A DNA stretch of 64,000 nucleotides, taken from contig FLMG01000335.1 in assembly GCA_900088475.1 (NCBI GenBank), positions 62,001 to 126,000 on the forward strand, written 5' to 3'. Below the pieces are notes generated by a model. It saw only the letters and a list, made by a program, of their open reading frames with translations, ran no database searches and had not been told where the DNA came from. Made by a program: the position numbers and the translations under genes. This document shows positions 10,959-17,665 of this stretch, one piece after another (positions within the stretch are counted from its first letter, which is position 1; every line of letters begins with the position of its first letter). The DNA is from Hyphochytrium catenoides (taxonomy: Eukaryota > Protista > Hyphochytriomycota).

Positions 10959-12301
10959 ATGCGCTTCGCTGTGGGAGCCTTGCGAGCCCTTGTTGCGCTA
11001 GCTTCAGCTGTGCTGCTCCCGGCCCTGATTGCATTGGGCCTGCTTTATACTCCTCGATATTACCCATACACTACTAGCCCCGAGGAATGCTGCAATCTGA
11101 CCGACTACGAGTCCGTCACTATCCATAGCCGGAACACGGATGTCCTCCTGTCTGGATGGTATTTTCCAGGTGCGGATGAGCTGACGATGCAGCACAGCGA
11201 GCTGCAGTCGGTGCGAAGGTTGTTCAACCCCAAGAACAAAGGCCACTGTGTGGTGGTGGTCCATGGACATCATGCACATATGGCAAAGGAAACATCGTGG
11301 GAGAAGTCAATAATGACTAAAGCTGTGCTACCTTTCGTTGCTGCTGGTAAGCTTCAATGTGAAACATAAAGATGGGGAATGGACAAAGGAGTGACACATT
11401 TAAAGAACGTGAAGTATTAGGGCTGCTGTAGGGTGGACCCGTCGAGCAGGTAGAGGAATACGAGCGTTGAAAAGAAGATCAGAGGGATAGAAGGGATAGG
11501 AGAGTTAGGGAGGCAGATGAAGAATTGTATCGCAAGGCTGAGCACATTTTGGGGCAATGGTACTCGCTTACGCCCCTCTGATTCTCAACTCCACGCCTCT
11601 GACCGTGCGAACTCGTAGGTTTCAACGTCATCACCTTTGACCACCGCAGCCATGGCCGCAGTACGTGGTGGAGACCTGTCACGATTGGATACGAAGAGGC
11701 CAAGGAAGTGCTGGCCGTCGTGGACTGGATATTGGACCAATCGCACTGCCCAAGCTCACAAAATAGGCGTGTCTTTGTATGGGGCGAAAGCATGGGTGCC
11801 GCTGCAACGGCCTTTGCCGCAGCACGGGACAAAAATCAAGCCAAAGCAGGAGAGAGAAAGATAGCGGGTATCATACTGGACAGTGCCTTTGAAAGCATGG
11901 ATAAGGTTATATCTCACTTTCTCAGTGGGACATTATTGTTTCCCCAATTCCTGGGTAACTCTGTGGTGCAGCTGCTGGATTTCTGGACTTGCTTACTTGG
12001 CCCTGTCTGCTTGCGAGACATTGATGTTTCCAAAGCGGTGAGAGATGTAAGAGTGCCAGCGCTTCTCGTGCATGGGTTAGGAGACAACCTTATCCCCTAT
12101 TCACACGCTGAGAGCCTTCTAGCTCATGCAAACAATCGCACGGCCTGTGGGGAGCCGGTGGTCACGGAGAGCTGGGTCCATGAAGGAGACCATGTGCGCT
12201 CCTATCTTTATCATGAAGAGTACTACCCTCTTATCGTGAACTTTCTGGAGAGAATCATAGACAGAGGGAATCAGACACTTGACTGTGCTGACGAAGACTA
12301 G
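10959..12301 (+). CDS. Alpha/beta-hydrolase (serine aminopeptidase S33/YqkD-like) with N-terminal membrane anchor; exons 10959-11346 and 11619-12301
   Basis: Hydrophobic N-terminus; LSGWYFP; VVVVHGH; GFNVITFDHRSHGRS across the splice; nucleophile elbow WGESMG; ILDSAF; PALLVHGLGDNLIP (catalytic Asp); GDHV (catalytic His). Confidence 0.9.
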
Positions 12302-12834: not shown

Positions 12835-15800
12835 CTACATAAAGCCAAGTTGGTCTCCGATCTCACTGATAAGTTCTCCAGGGAGCCCTGCAGTATTGAC
12901 AGCCTCCATAAGGGCTGGGTTTCTCTTTACGAGAGTGAGGCAAACGTCTCTTAATGAGTCAGGCTGACGAGGCCCACAGAGTACAACCGTACAATTGTTA
13001 CCACCAGCCACCTGAAAGGAGCAGAGTCACCGGGTGAATTCATTTAGCGATAGGCGTAAACAAGAGGAGGTCATGTGACAACTCACTAGCAAGATCGATG
13101 GATCTTTGTGGTGCTTTGTATGCCAAGATCAAAAGAGCGCGAGATAGGAGTAGAAGCGTCATCGAGCTACCTGTTTAACCCTCCGCCTGCTATCTTTCAG
13201 GTCTCTAACCAGACGTGGTAGATGCTCATTGGCTGTATTGCCATGACCTAATTGCCCACTCTGACCATTGCCAAATGTATAGACCTCACCATTTTCTGGG
13301 AGGAAGTTCAGGTTAGGCCGTATAGGGGTTGAAGGAATGGCTTAAGAGCAACGATCCTCACCAAGTAGAGCTGCTGTGTGTTCTCCCCCGCAGGCGAGCT
13401 GTACCACGTGGCGCCCGACCAGTGCTTCAACTCTGGTAAAGGTACTCTGCACAGAGCAGTATTCAGTTAGGTTTGCGCCATTTTGTACTTAGACGGAGTG
13501 GTGTGAGCTACAGTGCCCGTTCTCCTTCCTCCACACGTCCCTCCAACTCCCTGTAGCTCCTGCTGGCTCCCTTGTTGTGTCGGTCTCGAGCCTCGACCTG
13601 TCATAGTGTCTTGCCTCTACCTGGAATGGATGCCCCCTTTCATTCCTAGGGAAGTTGGCAGGGTCTCCGAGACCGAGTTGGCCCTGCAGATTCCTCCCAC
13701 ACGTGTAAATATGCCCACCACGGGTCAAAGCGGCACTGTGGCCCCAGCCAGCTACGACCTGACATACACCCTTGCCCCTCAACGACTCAACGAGCTATCG
13801 TCAAGGAGGGGCATGAAGCTCATCAGTACTCATTTGGGCTAGCGATTTGTTGAAAAGCTCAGATGGTGAGCGCGCCAAAAATAAGGTGAGAGGAAGAACA
13901 TCCTCAAGAACAAAGAGCAACTGGGAACGCGAGGGAGTGCTAAGGATGGGTACCATACGCCGATGGTTCACTAGTACGCTCTCTTACCCTTGGTGTAGGC
14001 AGAAAGAAGGCCCCGTCTCTGTTGCGGGGAACAATATCAGAGTTCTTATAGCCCAGTTGACCGACGCGATTGTGGCCCCAAGTGTATACGTCTCCCTCCT
14101 CAGTTAGTGCCATTGTATGGTATCCACCGGGGCCGACGCTTACTTGGACCACACGGCTCTCTCCAAAAGCATCAAGAAGAGTAGGCACAAGGACGTCTTC
14201 GTAGAGACCGTGACCCGTGTACTCGTACTGGTCACACAAGCAATTTTGTTATATAGCAGAACCCCAAGGCAGGATGGAAGGCGAGACAAACAAGATGTCA
14301 AACAAACACATTAAAGAAGCTATTCTACATAATGGGCTCCTCTACCTTGCCAAAAGAATAAATATGGGAATCATCCGTCAATATACAGGTATGGACGGAG
14401 CCCGCAAAAACTTGGCGCACTCTTTTGCCATCAAGCGACCCAATCTGGGAATACAAGGAAAAAAGTGAGGGGAGATAGCATGTTTTTGCTTGGTTGGCAA
14501 TTCTTGCGGCTCTACGTGGGTTGCTCCTTCCAGGACCTTACTAGGCATGACTGTTCAGCTACCTACCTTCACTGGAGTGTGTACATCCCTAATGTCGCCG
14601 GTGCCAAGCCTGCCATTTTCCCCTGCTCCCCATACATACAATTCACCTGCACACATTAATAAGAATCCTGATGGGTAGCACTTACATGGTCTCCGACACC
14701 TTACCTCCCTTTGACACTGCCGCCGTGTATGCAAAGCCGCATGCAACTTGCATACAGTCAACCTAAAGGAAAGGCGGCAGCGATATGATGATTAACGGGA
14801 ATCGATGGGTTATAATCGCAAAGTAGGACGCTTATCCCAACATTCTGGGAGTCCACCCCAGCAATACAGAGCGGCGTTAACAAGGGGTAGAGAGGATCAG
14901 GGTAGAACACCTACGTTAGACAGCGCCTGGATCTTTTTCGGTATCAGAACGTCATTAGCGTTACCGTGTCCCAGTCTCCCGAAGCCACCCCTTCCCCAGG
15001 AGTATATCTCGCCATAATCAGTGAGTACAGCAGCATGCTGGCCTCCACAGGACACCTAGAAATGCAAGAGTAAGTTCACCTAAAAGTTGAAATGGTTGAT
15101 ATGGATAAAGGCAAGGAGGGCAGTCAGGACCTGTGTGACGTGGAGCCCTAAGAGACTCTCCATCATAGTGGGATTCACATTCTTCGTGGTTTCTTTATCT
15201 TCTACGGTCCCCATCACGTAGACAACCTGCCAGCGATATCTTGTATAAGTGGGGTGAAGTTCGAGGTGACTTGTTGAGGTTTGGCGATTGCAAGGATATG
15301 CAGGCATGTCCACTTTATCAGATCCATGTGTACAATCTTACTCTATTCGGGTCCACAGCACTTTGAAAGCTCTGATATAAACTCCGACCCTCTTGGCAAA
15401 AGGCTAGATAACGCTCCAAATCCACCCAGTGATCCTCACTGAGCTCAGGTTAGAACAGTTCGACACAGTACAGGACCAGCTTTGACGCACAGGAGAGGGT
15501 ATAAGGAGATCTAAAGCGCAATTCCTAACTTCGTTCTTAATTGGCAAATGAGTCATAGAGAACTAGCGAAAAAGGAGGGAGGGACGCAAAGAATCAAAAG
15601 ATGGTACAGACCTTACGCTCTTGGTGATAATAACAGCCTTGAATTTTTCCATTACGGGAGGTACCTGCACTCCGTACTCTAATGTGAAAGCTTCGGCGAA
15701 GTCATTCCATGAGACTTTAAGAGGCATCTGCAGCGATTGAAAGGAGAAAGATCTTAGATTGAGAGCACACACAAGTGAAGAAGCGAAAGCTGCTCCTTTT

Positions 15801-16768
15801 CCTCCCAAATCGGGGATGGACTTAGGTAAGACGCGAGTAGAAGCAGATCCATTTGCCAGACATGCTTATTGCTTATAGCTCGGTGCCATGAGTGACAATC
15901 CAGACCTGTTTTCCAAGCCGCTTCAGCCAAAATCCCAGTGTGGCTGAGCGGGTTAATAGTGCATCTCGTCCTTGAAAGAGTGGGCTTAGCTGTCTGTAAG
16001 CCTCTGTTGGAGAGGAAAGAATCCATTGTCCCATTTCCTAGAGAGATCGAGTTGGCGGACAGAACCACGGTGAGGGTAGGGCAAATTGTGAGTGTCAGTG
16101 CTTCGTACTTCCACGACCTTTCCTTCCAATTTACCTTCAGAGTGCCAACCTCACTTCCATATATTGACTCTTTGTATATTCCTGTTGCAGACGCCACCTT
16201 AGTTTACAGAGAGAAGAGCACAATAATAAAGCGCAGTACTAAGCAACGTGTGAAGAAGGGTGAGGAGCAGTGTGTTCGGCCCAAAGCAAGCATCGGTGCT
16301 GCCTTGACACTTCAGCTCTAGGATAGTAGACCAAGATTTTTGTCTACCAAATGGCATTGATTGGTACTATGCGAGTATAAAGGAAAAGCTTCTCCACCCT
16401 ACCGAAATAGTTAGGTACATGTTCCGCGTTGTCCTGCAACAATCTGACTACAGTCAACAGAATGTTCTCCAGCAAGCCAAAGATAAACGAGAGATCTGAA
16501 GGTAGCGGGAGTTCGAAAGAACTACCGAGAGGCAGTGTCCCTGAGCAGTACGACAGGACCTAATATGGTTTGAAATGTAAGCCATTTCTGCGCCAACTTC
16601 CTAAAGCTTCATATAATGCATCCAACAGCTTGCTTCTGCCCTATTGCTGGTCCTTACCTTACGAACTAGAGCTGAGAGGCCAGGGATGTCCAGAGCGCCC
16701 GAGGGGTTCTTCTCAATGAGCTCCAGAATAGCAACAGAGTGCTTGATCAAGCGCTTAGTCTGAGCCAT
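12835..16768 (-). CDS. RCC1-repeat beta-propeller protein with N-terminal Cbl-EF-like region and C-terminal BC/SOCS-box-like motif (many exons)
   Basis: RCC1 blades: VSCGGQHAAVLTDYGEIYSWGRGGFGRLGHG, ELYVWGAGENGRLGTG, VSVGPGGYHTMALTEEGDVYTWGHNRVGQLG, VVAGWGHSAALTRGGHIYTCGRNLQGQLGLG, LACGGEHTAAL..GEVYTFGNGQSGQLGHG. Start MAQTKRLIKH at 16768. The last exon ends ...GDQLGFM* at 12835. Confidence 0.88.
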
Positions 16769-17665
16769 CCTAGCCCCTAGCCGAGTACCAAGAACCTTGA
16801 AACCCTCCCACCTTTCCCGTTGTGCTCCTAGAGCTGACGATGTTCAATAATATGCGAGCAACCCTAACGTCAGCAGCGACGTTTATCGCAACCTGGCTGC
16901 CTGCCCCTTCACCCTCTTGCGCTCAACCCGTGTGAGGTGTGATGACCTTGGGAAAGAGCTCTGAGATGTTTCTCAACTCAAGGATGGACCTGATCTTTTG
17001 CCTTCTGATGGCTGGGCTCGCCGGTGGCAGCGTTGGGAGCGGATCCGAGCAGCATCAGAAGCTGCAACGCTTTGCCGAGGCGAGTAACTGCGAACGCAGG
17101 TGGGAAACTCAGAATCGGACTTACCTCTACCCAATTCTCTACCCAAACCTATGCCGTGCTAGCGATTAGGAATTATTGCCCCGTAGAATATTCTTAGATT
17201 CTCAATAGATATTGTTATAGAGAGGCCTATTCTGTATCTTTATAACCTACGAAACTACAACACTTATGTATGACAGAAGCGTCCTGAACATACTCCTCCT
17301 ATCGTGTTCGCCCCGTCGTGCGTGCCACTTCTGACCTACCTAGCACCTGTTCGGCAGCACCAGGACCGCAACAGCAGCAGCGTGACGAGGCTCATAAGCA
17401 AGCAACCAGAGAAGATACCCTTGATGAGAACAGACCTTGCGGGTTGATCCTTCCCCTCATCAGGATCCAGAAAGGGAAGTGAGAACAGCAGGTAGCCATG
17501 GCGCCATGCCATATTAAAGGCTGTTCGGTACACTATCATGGTGAAATTTTCTGATCTCCCTCTCTCTTCGGCGGCGGAGAAGGAGGTGCATCGTATTAAC
17601 CAAATCTTTCAATGCGGTAACGATTTGTCAATGTTTGGTTGTTCTCAACGGCAATAATCGATACA

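Follow-up and report, generated by a model that had tools for sequence, protein, structure and literature searches.

To our knowledge, the TKB region of the Cbl ubiquitin ligases has so far been treated as one unit, composed of a four-helix bundle (4H), an EF-hand domain and an SH2 domain, and associated with phosphotyrosine signalling in animals, choanoflagellates and amoebozoans. In the Cbl family (c-Cbl, Cbl-b, Cbl-c and choanoflagellate Cbl) this SH2 domain is of a variant type, and the proteins also have a linker helix and a RING of their own. RCC1-like domains occur within other ubiquitin-ligase proteins, with BTB in the CUL3 adaptors RCBTB1 and RCBTB2, with HECT in the HERC family and with an F-box in FBXO24. 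SOCS-box receptors such as WSB1, ASB9, SOCS2 and SPSB end in a box of ~40 residues, in which a BC-box, (S/T/P)LxxxCxxx(I/L/V), and an LP-containing helix follow the protein-binding domain. Here we describe a gene of Hyphochytrium catenoides (Hyphochytriomycota) whose product combines parts resembling those of all these systems. It occupies positions 16768-12835 on the minus strand of the window, i.e. the whole stretch of 64,000 nucleotides that was analysed (contig FLMG01000335.1, positions 62,001 to 126,000), which is eukaryotic and intron-rich.

This single 16-exon gene encodes a Cbl-like module, an RCC1 propeller and a SOCS-box-like tail, and we favour the reading that its product would act as an Elongin-C-based cullin-RING receptor. 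The protein probably represents a type of substrate receptor for ubiquitin ligases that has not been described before. Each of the parts is of a known kind, and it is their combination and taxonomic setting that are new; a full-text literature search found no description of this domain combination.

An orthologue family annotated as RCC1 proteins

The window protein was searched exon by exon, and folding and database-wide tests were carried out on database orthologues, to which the window exons were tied by alignment. We reached the family stepwise, from the propeller exon 14227-13988 (65-70% identity to orthologues) to intronless metagenomic genes, then with one of these as query, and then with the nearest orthologue, P0037, as second query. 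Some 35 proteins, mostly 600-730 residues long and mainly from ochrophyte stramenopiles, share the N-terminal module. Named sources are Octactis speculum, Aureococcus, an unclassified pelagophyte, Nannochloropsis gaditana, Tribonema minus, Ectocarpus, Undaria and the diatom Leptocylindrus danicus. The databases label these proteins 'RCC1', 'RCC1-like' or 'alpha-tubulin suppressor-like', and their precomputed Pfam domains are RCC1 families only; both flanking modules are therefore invisible to standard annotation.

A Cbl-like module at the N-terminus

Both its sequence profile and its predicted fold relate the N-terminal module most closely to the 4H-EF half of the Cbl TKB, in line with the Cbl-like four-helix and EF-hand module that a preliminary description of this DNA had inferred from its letters. 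A profile, A2, built from 35 orthologue N-termini and the window exons was run against all PDB sequences with hmmsearch: the top 16 matches were all c-Cbl TKB chains (E 0.003), with choanoflagellate Cbl lower, and the top 17 of a profile limited to the EF-hands were again all c-Cbl (E 0.05). In Pfam, Cbl_N2 was the only family matched repeatedly, by 7 of the 40 N-termini scanned singly (best E 4.2e-4); P0037 matched it at profile positions 9-68 of 84 (E 0.015), and the orthologue family holds a Cbl_N2-type EF-hand-like domain.

An AlphaFold2 model of P0037:20-250 made with A2, with a predicted local distance difference test (pLDDT) score of 87 and a predicted template modelling (TM) score (pTM) of 0.81, begins with four long helices, which are followed by a pair of helix-strand-helix units and a final helix. 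When the whole module was compared with the PDB using Foldseek, the top 50 matches were all Cbl, Cbl-b, Cbl-c or choanoflagellate Cbl, with ~220 columns aligned. The EF-only model likewise had Cbl in all of its top 50 matches (TM 0.62-0.70, root-mean-square deviation 2.2-2.8). In a shape search of the ESM Atlas, the leading matches were Cbl clusters (TM ~0.5 over 157-173 residues), alongside the RCC1 cluster of the family itself. At the level of the family, profile, Pfam, Foldseek and ESM Atlas comparisons thus all point to Cbl.

The sequence core common to the family and to Cbl, FW.K.FG....V.W..F..AF, lies in the first EF-hand. In the window, exon 4 (15906..16037, minus strand, as are all exons below) encodes a variable linker and the entering helix of EF-hand 1 (…LGFWLKRLGKQ), and it aligns through the family profile with the Cbl stretch AAEFWRKAFG. 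Exon 5 (15617..15727), aligned in alignment A4, supplies the loop and exiting helix of EF-hand 1 (KVSWNDFAEAFTLEYG) and the entering helix of EF-hand 2, so that the sequence at the exon junction reads FWLKRLGKQ|MPLKVSWNDFAEAF. Exon 6 (15342..15443; family profile positions 198-230, E 7.6e-11; 41% identity to P0037 in A4) adds the loop and helix of EF-hand 2 and the last helix (…LYQSFQSAVDPNR), and leads into the propeller. The EF-hand motif from which a likeness to Cbl had been drawn is conserved as far as this core is concerned, whereas the 'FQG' counted with it belongs to the variable, non-conserved linker and is coincidental.

Two features of Cbl are not found in the module. In A4 the loop of the second EF-hand differs between members in both length and sequence, with large insertions, and that of the window (TKSLSEDHWVDLERY) shows no DxDxDG-type pattern in the alignment; the Ca2+ site that Cbl has there is not conserved, and calcium regulation is therefore not expected. 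The first propeller strand directly follows the last EF helix (…DPNR|VVYVMG), at the position of the Cbl SH2 domain. The 661-codon model and the orthologues of 655-694 residues consist of module, propeller and tail, with neither an SH2 nor a RING, which agrees with the earlier proposal that an RCC1 propeller stands in place of SH2 and RING. As there is no SH2, phosphotyrosine ('TKB') binding is not expected. We also searched the 61-Mb assembly (4759 contigs, G000, in which the window is G000:C499:62001-126000) with the Cbl_N, Cbl_N2, Cbl_N3 and SOCS_box profiles: none matched at the locus, no canonical Cbl was detected, and Cbl_N3 had no match anywhere in the genome.

Several observations weigh against kinship with Cbl. 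No sequence match to Cbl reaches the family threshold (E 0.003 to 0.05; 16 bits in Pfam for a cut-off of 22), and identity is 11-20%. The window's own N-terminal exons have no Pfam match, the Cbl_N2 genome search misses the locus, and the predicted structures are those of the orthologue P0037, not of the window protein. The global TM of the whole module in Foldseek is 0.37, a low value because the bundle and the EF pair are oriented differently in the model than in Cbl. The bundle alone is unspecific: in an unbiased structure search, MLKL, NRG1, Rx coiled-coil domains and others match it equally well.

These marginal E-values, the low identity and a bundle equally like many unrelated four-helix bundles would fit a module that merely converges on the shape of Cbl, in which a generic bundle of helices precedes two degenerate EF-hands, with no shared ancestry and no functional meaning. 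We hold such convergence to be improbable. In an unbiased search, the Z score of the EF part with Cbl exceeded that with any other EF-hand protein by 5 units, and Cbl was the sole choice of the sequence methods and, independently, of the structure methods. The order and spacing of the subdomains are those of Cbl, and the FW.K.FG....V.W..F pattern is common to both. In the structural superposition, the helices of the bundle pair one to one with the four of Cbl. An alignment of 'NEYF' of Cbl with the family motif 'NYFG', produced by A2 against the PDB, conflicts with this pairing of helices and was not relied on.

The RCC1 propeller

The Cbl-like module is followed by an RCC1-like propeller of seven blades (Pfam PF00415, PF25390), as had been estimated from the letters. 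It is encoded by exons 7-15 (13171..15226, i.e. 15226-15131, 15055-14915, 14762-14705, 14646-14567, 14444-14346, 14227-13988, 13794-13621, 13446-13362 and 13295-13171, with GT-AG introns). Seven blade strands of the G-x-H type are readable in the window, and four of the propeller exons match the Pfam RCC1 families RCC1, RCC1_2 and WD40_RLD singly (E 1e-12 to 5e-8). Solved relatives of the propeller include RCC1, RPGR, UVR8 and HERC2, and the orthologue propeller is closest to the HERC2 RLD (E 5e-76) and UVR8 among these structures; its next relatives in the databases are RCBTB-like and plant PRAF-like proteins.

A SOCS-box-like tail

Exon 16 (12835..13011) has an AG acceptor and encodes the last blade strand (VAGGNNCTVVLCG), a tail and the TAG stop codon. 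A tail of ~45 residues is the third part in the fixed order of the family, and 37 of the fetched proteins have a tail after the last blade. We aligned 28 tails (27 from orthologues and that of the window; alignment A3), whose common motif is [PS]-L-x-x-x-C-x-x-x-[ILVM], then 10-20 residues, then LP-x-x-[LVI]. The Leu of the first part is invariant, and most of the 28 tails retain its Cys. In the window, SLRDVCLTLV (12928..12957, minus strand) fits the BC-box pattern (S/T/P)LxxxCxxx(I/L/V), and LPGELISEI (12859..12885, minus strand) stands at the position of the Cul-box, at the expected distance; the Pro of LP is kept in at least 90% of the tails.

The only Pfam family matched by more than one tail was SOCS_box, with 4 of the 28. 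P0050 scored 24.4 bits, above the cut-off of 23.5 (E 3.6e-5), P0011 reached E 0.013 across profile positions 1-34 of 39, which include the LP part, and P0064 and P0093 had E 0.075 and 0.083, respectively, these last three being sub-threshold. In all four, the residues matched to SOCS_box include those homologous to the BC-box of the window. Distant, short and AT-rich members still keep TL..LCL at their C-termini. No BTB match was found after the propeller, where a BTB/BACK region was looked for and there are only these ~45 residues, and the ESM Atlas features of the tail were uninformative. With its conserved BC-box followed by LPxxL, the tail resembles a divergent SOCS box in sequence. The terminal BC/SOCS-box of the preliminary description thus holds for the BC-box, which is conserved, and for those orthologue tails that reach SOCS_box, whereas the window tail itself has no match.

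Elongin C and cullins in the genome

The genome contains an intron-split Elongin C gene (G000:C4408, ~16650-17100, plus strand), whose exon with SGTIKAMLSG reads HEFFVDKRCAMVSGTIKAMLSG; this exon matches human Elongin C at E 3e-5, and all of its top matches are Elongin C. The locus L026:1402-1752 is likewise assigned to Elongin C. Skp1 is encoded at G000:C3415:24846-25116 (minus strand). Four cullin genes were found, which by best PDB match are Cul1-like, Cul4-like, Cul4/3-like with a divergent N-terminus, and untyped. The C-terminal half of the cullin encoded at G000:C3462:140612-143335 (plus strand) is nearest to Cul4/Cul3, and a PDB search at E 0.01 matched nothing to its adaptor-binding N-terminal exon; this cullin could be the Elongin C partner of the lineage.

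A candidate cullin-RING substrate receptor

The main rival explanation keeps the architecture and denies the cullin link: the tail would be an amphipathic C-terminal helix that packs against the propeller or the Cbl-like module instead of a cullin-adaptor box, and the protein would be a scaffold or an RCC1-type regulator, e.g. a small-GTPase exchange factor, outside the ubiquitin system. A number of results speak for it or against a receptor. The window tail has no Pfam match at E up to 10, and the genome search with SOCS_box misses the locus. The tail profile has no significant match in the PDB, where the SOCS box of ASB9 is at E ~1 and the best rows, at E 0.07-0.2, are a leucine-rich repeat protein and the BTB-BACK region of NPR1. 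LPGELISEI is not a canonical LPxP, and the P0040/P0052 clade has no LP. Among the four cullin genes found, none is a clear Cul2 or Cul5, and RCC1-like domains have many roles, as in RCC1, RPGR, UVR8 and HERC2. We nevertheless rate a tail without a cullin link as rather unlikely, since the exact BC-box spacing is kept in distant members, even in AT-rich ones reduced to TL..LCL, SOCS_box is the only Pfam family matched by several tails, once above its cut-off, and Elongin C is present in the genome.

In the receptor reading that we favour, the tail helix would dock on Elongin C and thereby recruit a cullin-Rbx core, the propeller would hold the substrate, and the Cbl-like module might offer a second, phosphotyrosine-independent docking surface. 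The whole would be the substrate receptor of an Elongin-C-based cullin-RING ligase, like WSB1 or RCBTB with a Cbl-type module added. The tail of SLAP2 is reported to bind the TKB domain of CBL phospho-independently (10.1101/2020.10.08.331397; structure 6xar), so that docking on this domain without use of the SH2 has a precedent. The architecture that underlay the earlier description of a candidate cullin-RING substrate receptor is supported by our data, whereas the receptor function and the ligase role are what we infer from sequence.

The family differs from each of the systems that it resembles. It has the 4H-EF order and spacing of the Cbl TKB, with an RCC1 propeller instead of the variant SH2 and with neither linker helix nor RING, and it has not kept the Ca2+ loop of EF-hand 2. 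Its link to ubiquitin, if any, would pass through the SOCS-box-like tail and a cullin and not through a RING of its own, and it is found in stramenopiles, whereas Cbl occurs in animals and their relatives. Like the SOCS-box receptors, it places a C-terminal box after a protein-binding domain, which in WSB1 is also a beta-propeller. However, that of WSB1 is of the WD40 and not of the RCC1 type, the Cul-box-like motif of the family is LPxxL and not LPxP, and the window tail is below all thresholds. With RCBTB1 and RCBTB2 it shares an RCC1-like propeller joined to a cullin-adaptor module, putative in the new family, which has no BTB/BACK but a ~45-residue SOCS-box-like tail and an extra N-terminal Cbl-like module. 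As in the HERC family, which includes its closest solved propeller, an RCC1-like domain would be part of a ubiquitin ligase, here without HECT; FBXO24 is a similar case with an F-box, which the new family also lacks.

Two of the three subdomains of the Cbl TKB thus appear without SH2, joined to another binding domain and, putatively, to another route of ubiquitin ligation, in algae without detectable Cbl. A more far-reaching reading, which we hold to be less likely than not, is that the 4H-EF half of Cbl is an ancient module in its own right, present also beyond animals and their relatives, and that in stramenopiles it was coupled to an RCC1 propeller and a SOCS box to give a new class of Elongin-C/cullin substrate receptors. 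If so, animal Cbl arose by the addition of SH2 and RING to a pre-existing module of the ubiquitin system, or else the module moved between lineages. If the architecture and its putative link to ubiquitin hold, the family would provide a testable case for the assembly of the Cbl substrate-binding platform, and a new type of receptor in the poorly known cullin-RING repertoire of stramenopiles (diatoms, brown algae, Nannochloropsis).

Gene structure and splicing

A boundary-by-boundary check reads the minus strand as a single gene of 16 exons and 661 codons, from an ATG at 16768 to a TAG stop at 12835, without internal stop and with GT-AG introns of 58-193 nt throughout. A family hidden Markov model (HMM) built without any window sequence matches five colinear minus-strand segments (16768-16670, 16490-16383, 15995-15891, 15727-15611 and 15437-15339).

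Exon 1 (16658..16768), with the first of these matches, contains the start codon and helix 1 of the four-helix bundle; it aligns with the first helix of the orthologues and ends with a GTaagg donor. Exon 2 (16348..16559; AG acceptor, GT donor) contributes helix B, helix C and the first part of helix D, with the NYFG motif of the family. The match at 16490-16383 continues through NYFG into RVEKLF, which favours the long form of this exon, and we extended it to 16348 because the N.FG motif, whose G is near-invariant among the orthologues, and the next helix are matched there. An alternative model, with exon 2 ending at 16403 and followed by an exon at 16317-16208, was rejected: it breaks the conserved G of N.FG, and 16317-16208 has no family HMM match. 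Exon 3 (16155..16197, 43 nt) is provisional. It would encode the remainder of helix D and was placed by splice-site and phase logic: no other GT-AG link in phase was found that joins exons 2 and 4 with exon 2 in its long form. It has no homology support and is not among the family HMM matches.

The preliminary description had spliced exon 4 in phase 0 to exon 5, and splice sites, phases and family HMM matches all agree with that join. Exon 4 is flanked by ...ctctctAG upstream and GTctgg downstream, and exon 5 by ...gctgcAG and GTaagg, both in phase 0. HMM positions 122-156 match on exon 4 (E 2.8e-4) and positions 151-189 on exon 5 (E 4.8e-11), back to back, and intronless or transcript-derived orthologues run unbroken across the junction, e.g. 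FWIKHFGRDVASVSWKDFEEAF. The peptides that had been quoted on its two sides are read exactly as such in the translations. The frame of exon 4, said to be missing from the track of open reading frames (ORFs), is present as ORF 15873-16034 in a list with a 30-residue minimum, and would drop from a 60-residue track. On these grounds, the exon 4/5 join is supported by homology, and the gene is real and intron-rich.

Taken singly, the N-terminal exons had no match in Pfam or the PDB, and a metagenome scan with exon 2 gave none; single N-terminal exons, like the tail, are too short for Pfam or PDB matches. A phmmer search with exon 4 alone against 1.8 billion representatives also returned 0 matches, which, with the missing homology support of exon 3, would suit a gene model that is wrong N-terminally, i.e. 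two genes, or a non-coding stretch at 16037-15906, the module being a joining artefact. Such an error is very improbable, as intronless orthologues and complete transcripts hold the same parts in one open frame, exons 1, 2, 4, 5 and 6 of the window match orthologues colinearly, and every splice site and phase fits. In a search for paralogues, exon 2, exon 4 and the tail were each single-copy in the genome.

Variation in the family and neighbouring genes

The first metagenomic genes reached with exon 14227-13988 proved to be a sister subfamily (P0001-P0008, from L010, L011 and L012; 551-634 residues) with a closely similar propeller (56-59% identity in one exon). It differs at the N-terminus, where the family HMM has no match, and possesses neither the Cbl-like module nor the SOCS-like tail. 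In the short, AT-rich members P0137 and P0141 (535-546 residues), the N-terminal module is reduced and the tails are pared to the BC-box (TLHDLCLNL and TLQDLCLKNFF). The P0052 cluster (L029) is a clade of intronless genes, e.g. in GCA_024449685.1, and includes a EukProt sequence labelled as from the foraminifer Bolivina argentea; the family may range beyond stramenopiles, or this label may reflect contamination.

A metagenome scaffold carries a GT41 gene (PF13844) ~2.6 kb away from the intronless orthologue P0037, the two loci being L027:1-408 and L027:3001-5019. In the window, a 197-residue ORF (11708-12301, plus strand) runs convergently towards the 3' end of the RCC1 gene; its GESMG motif resembles an alpha/beta-hydrolase nucleophile elbow.

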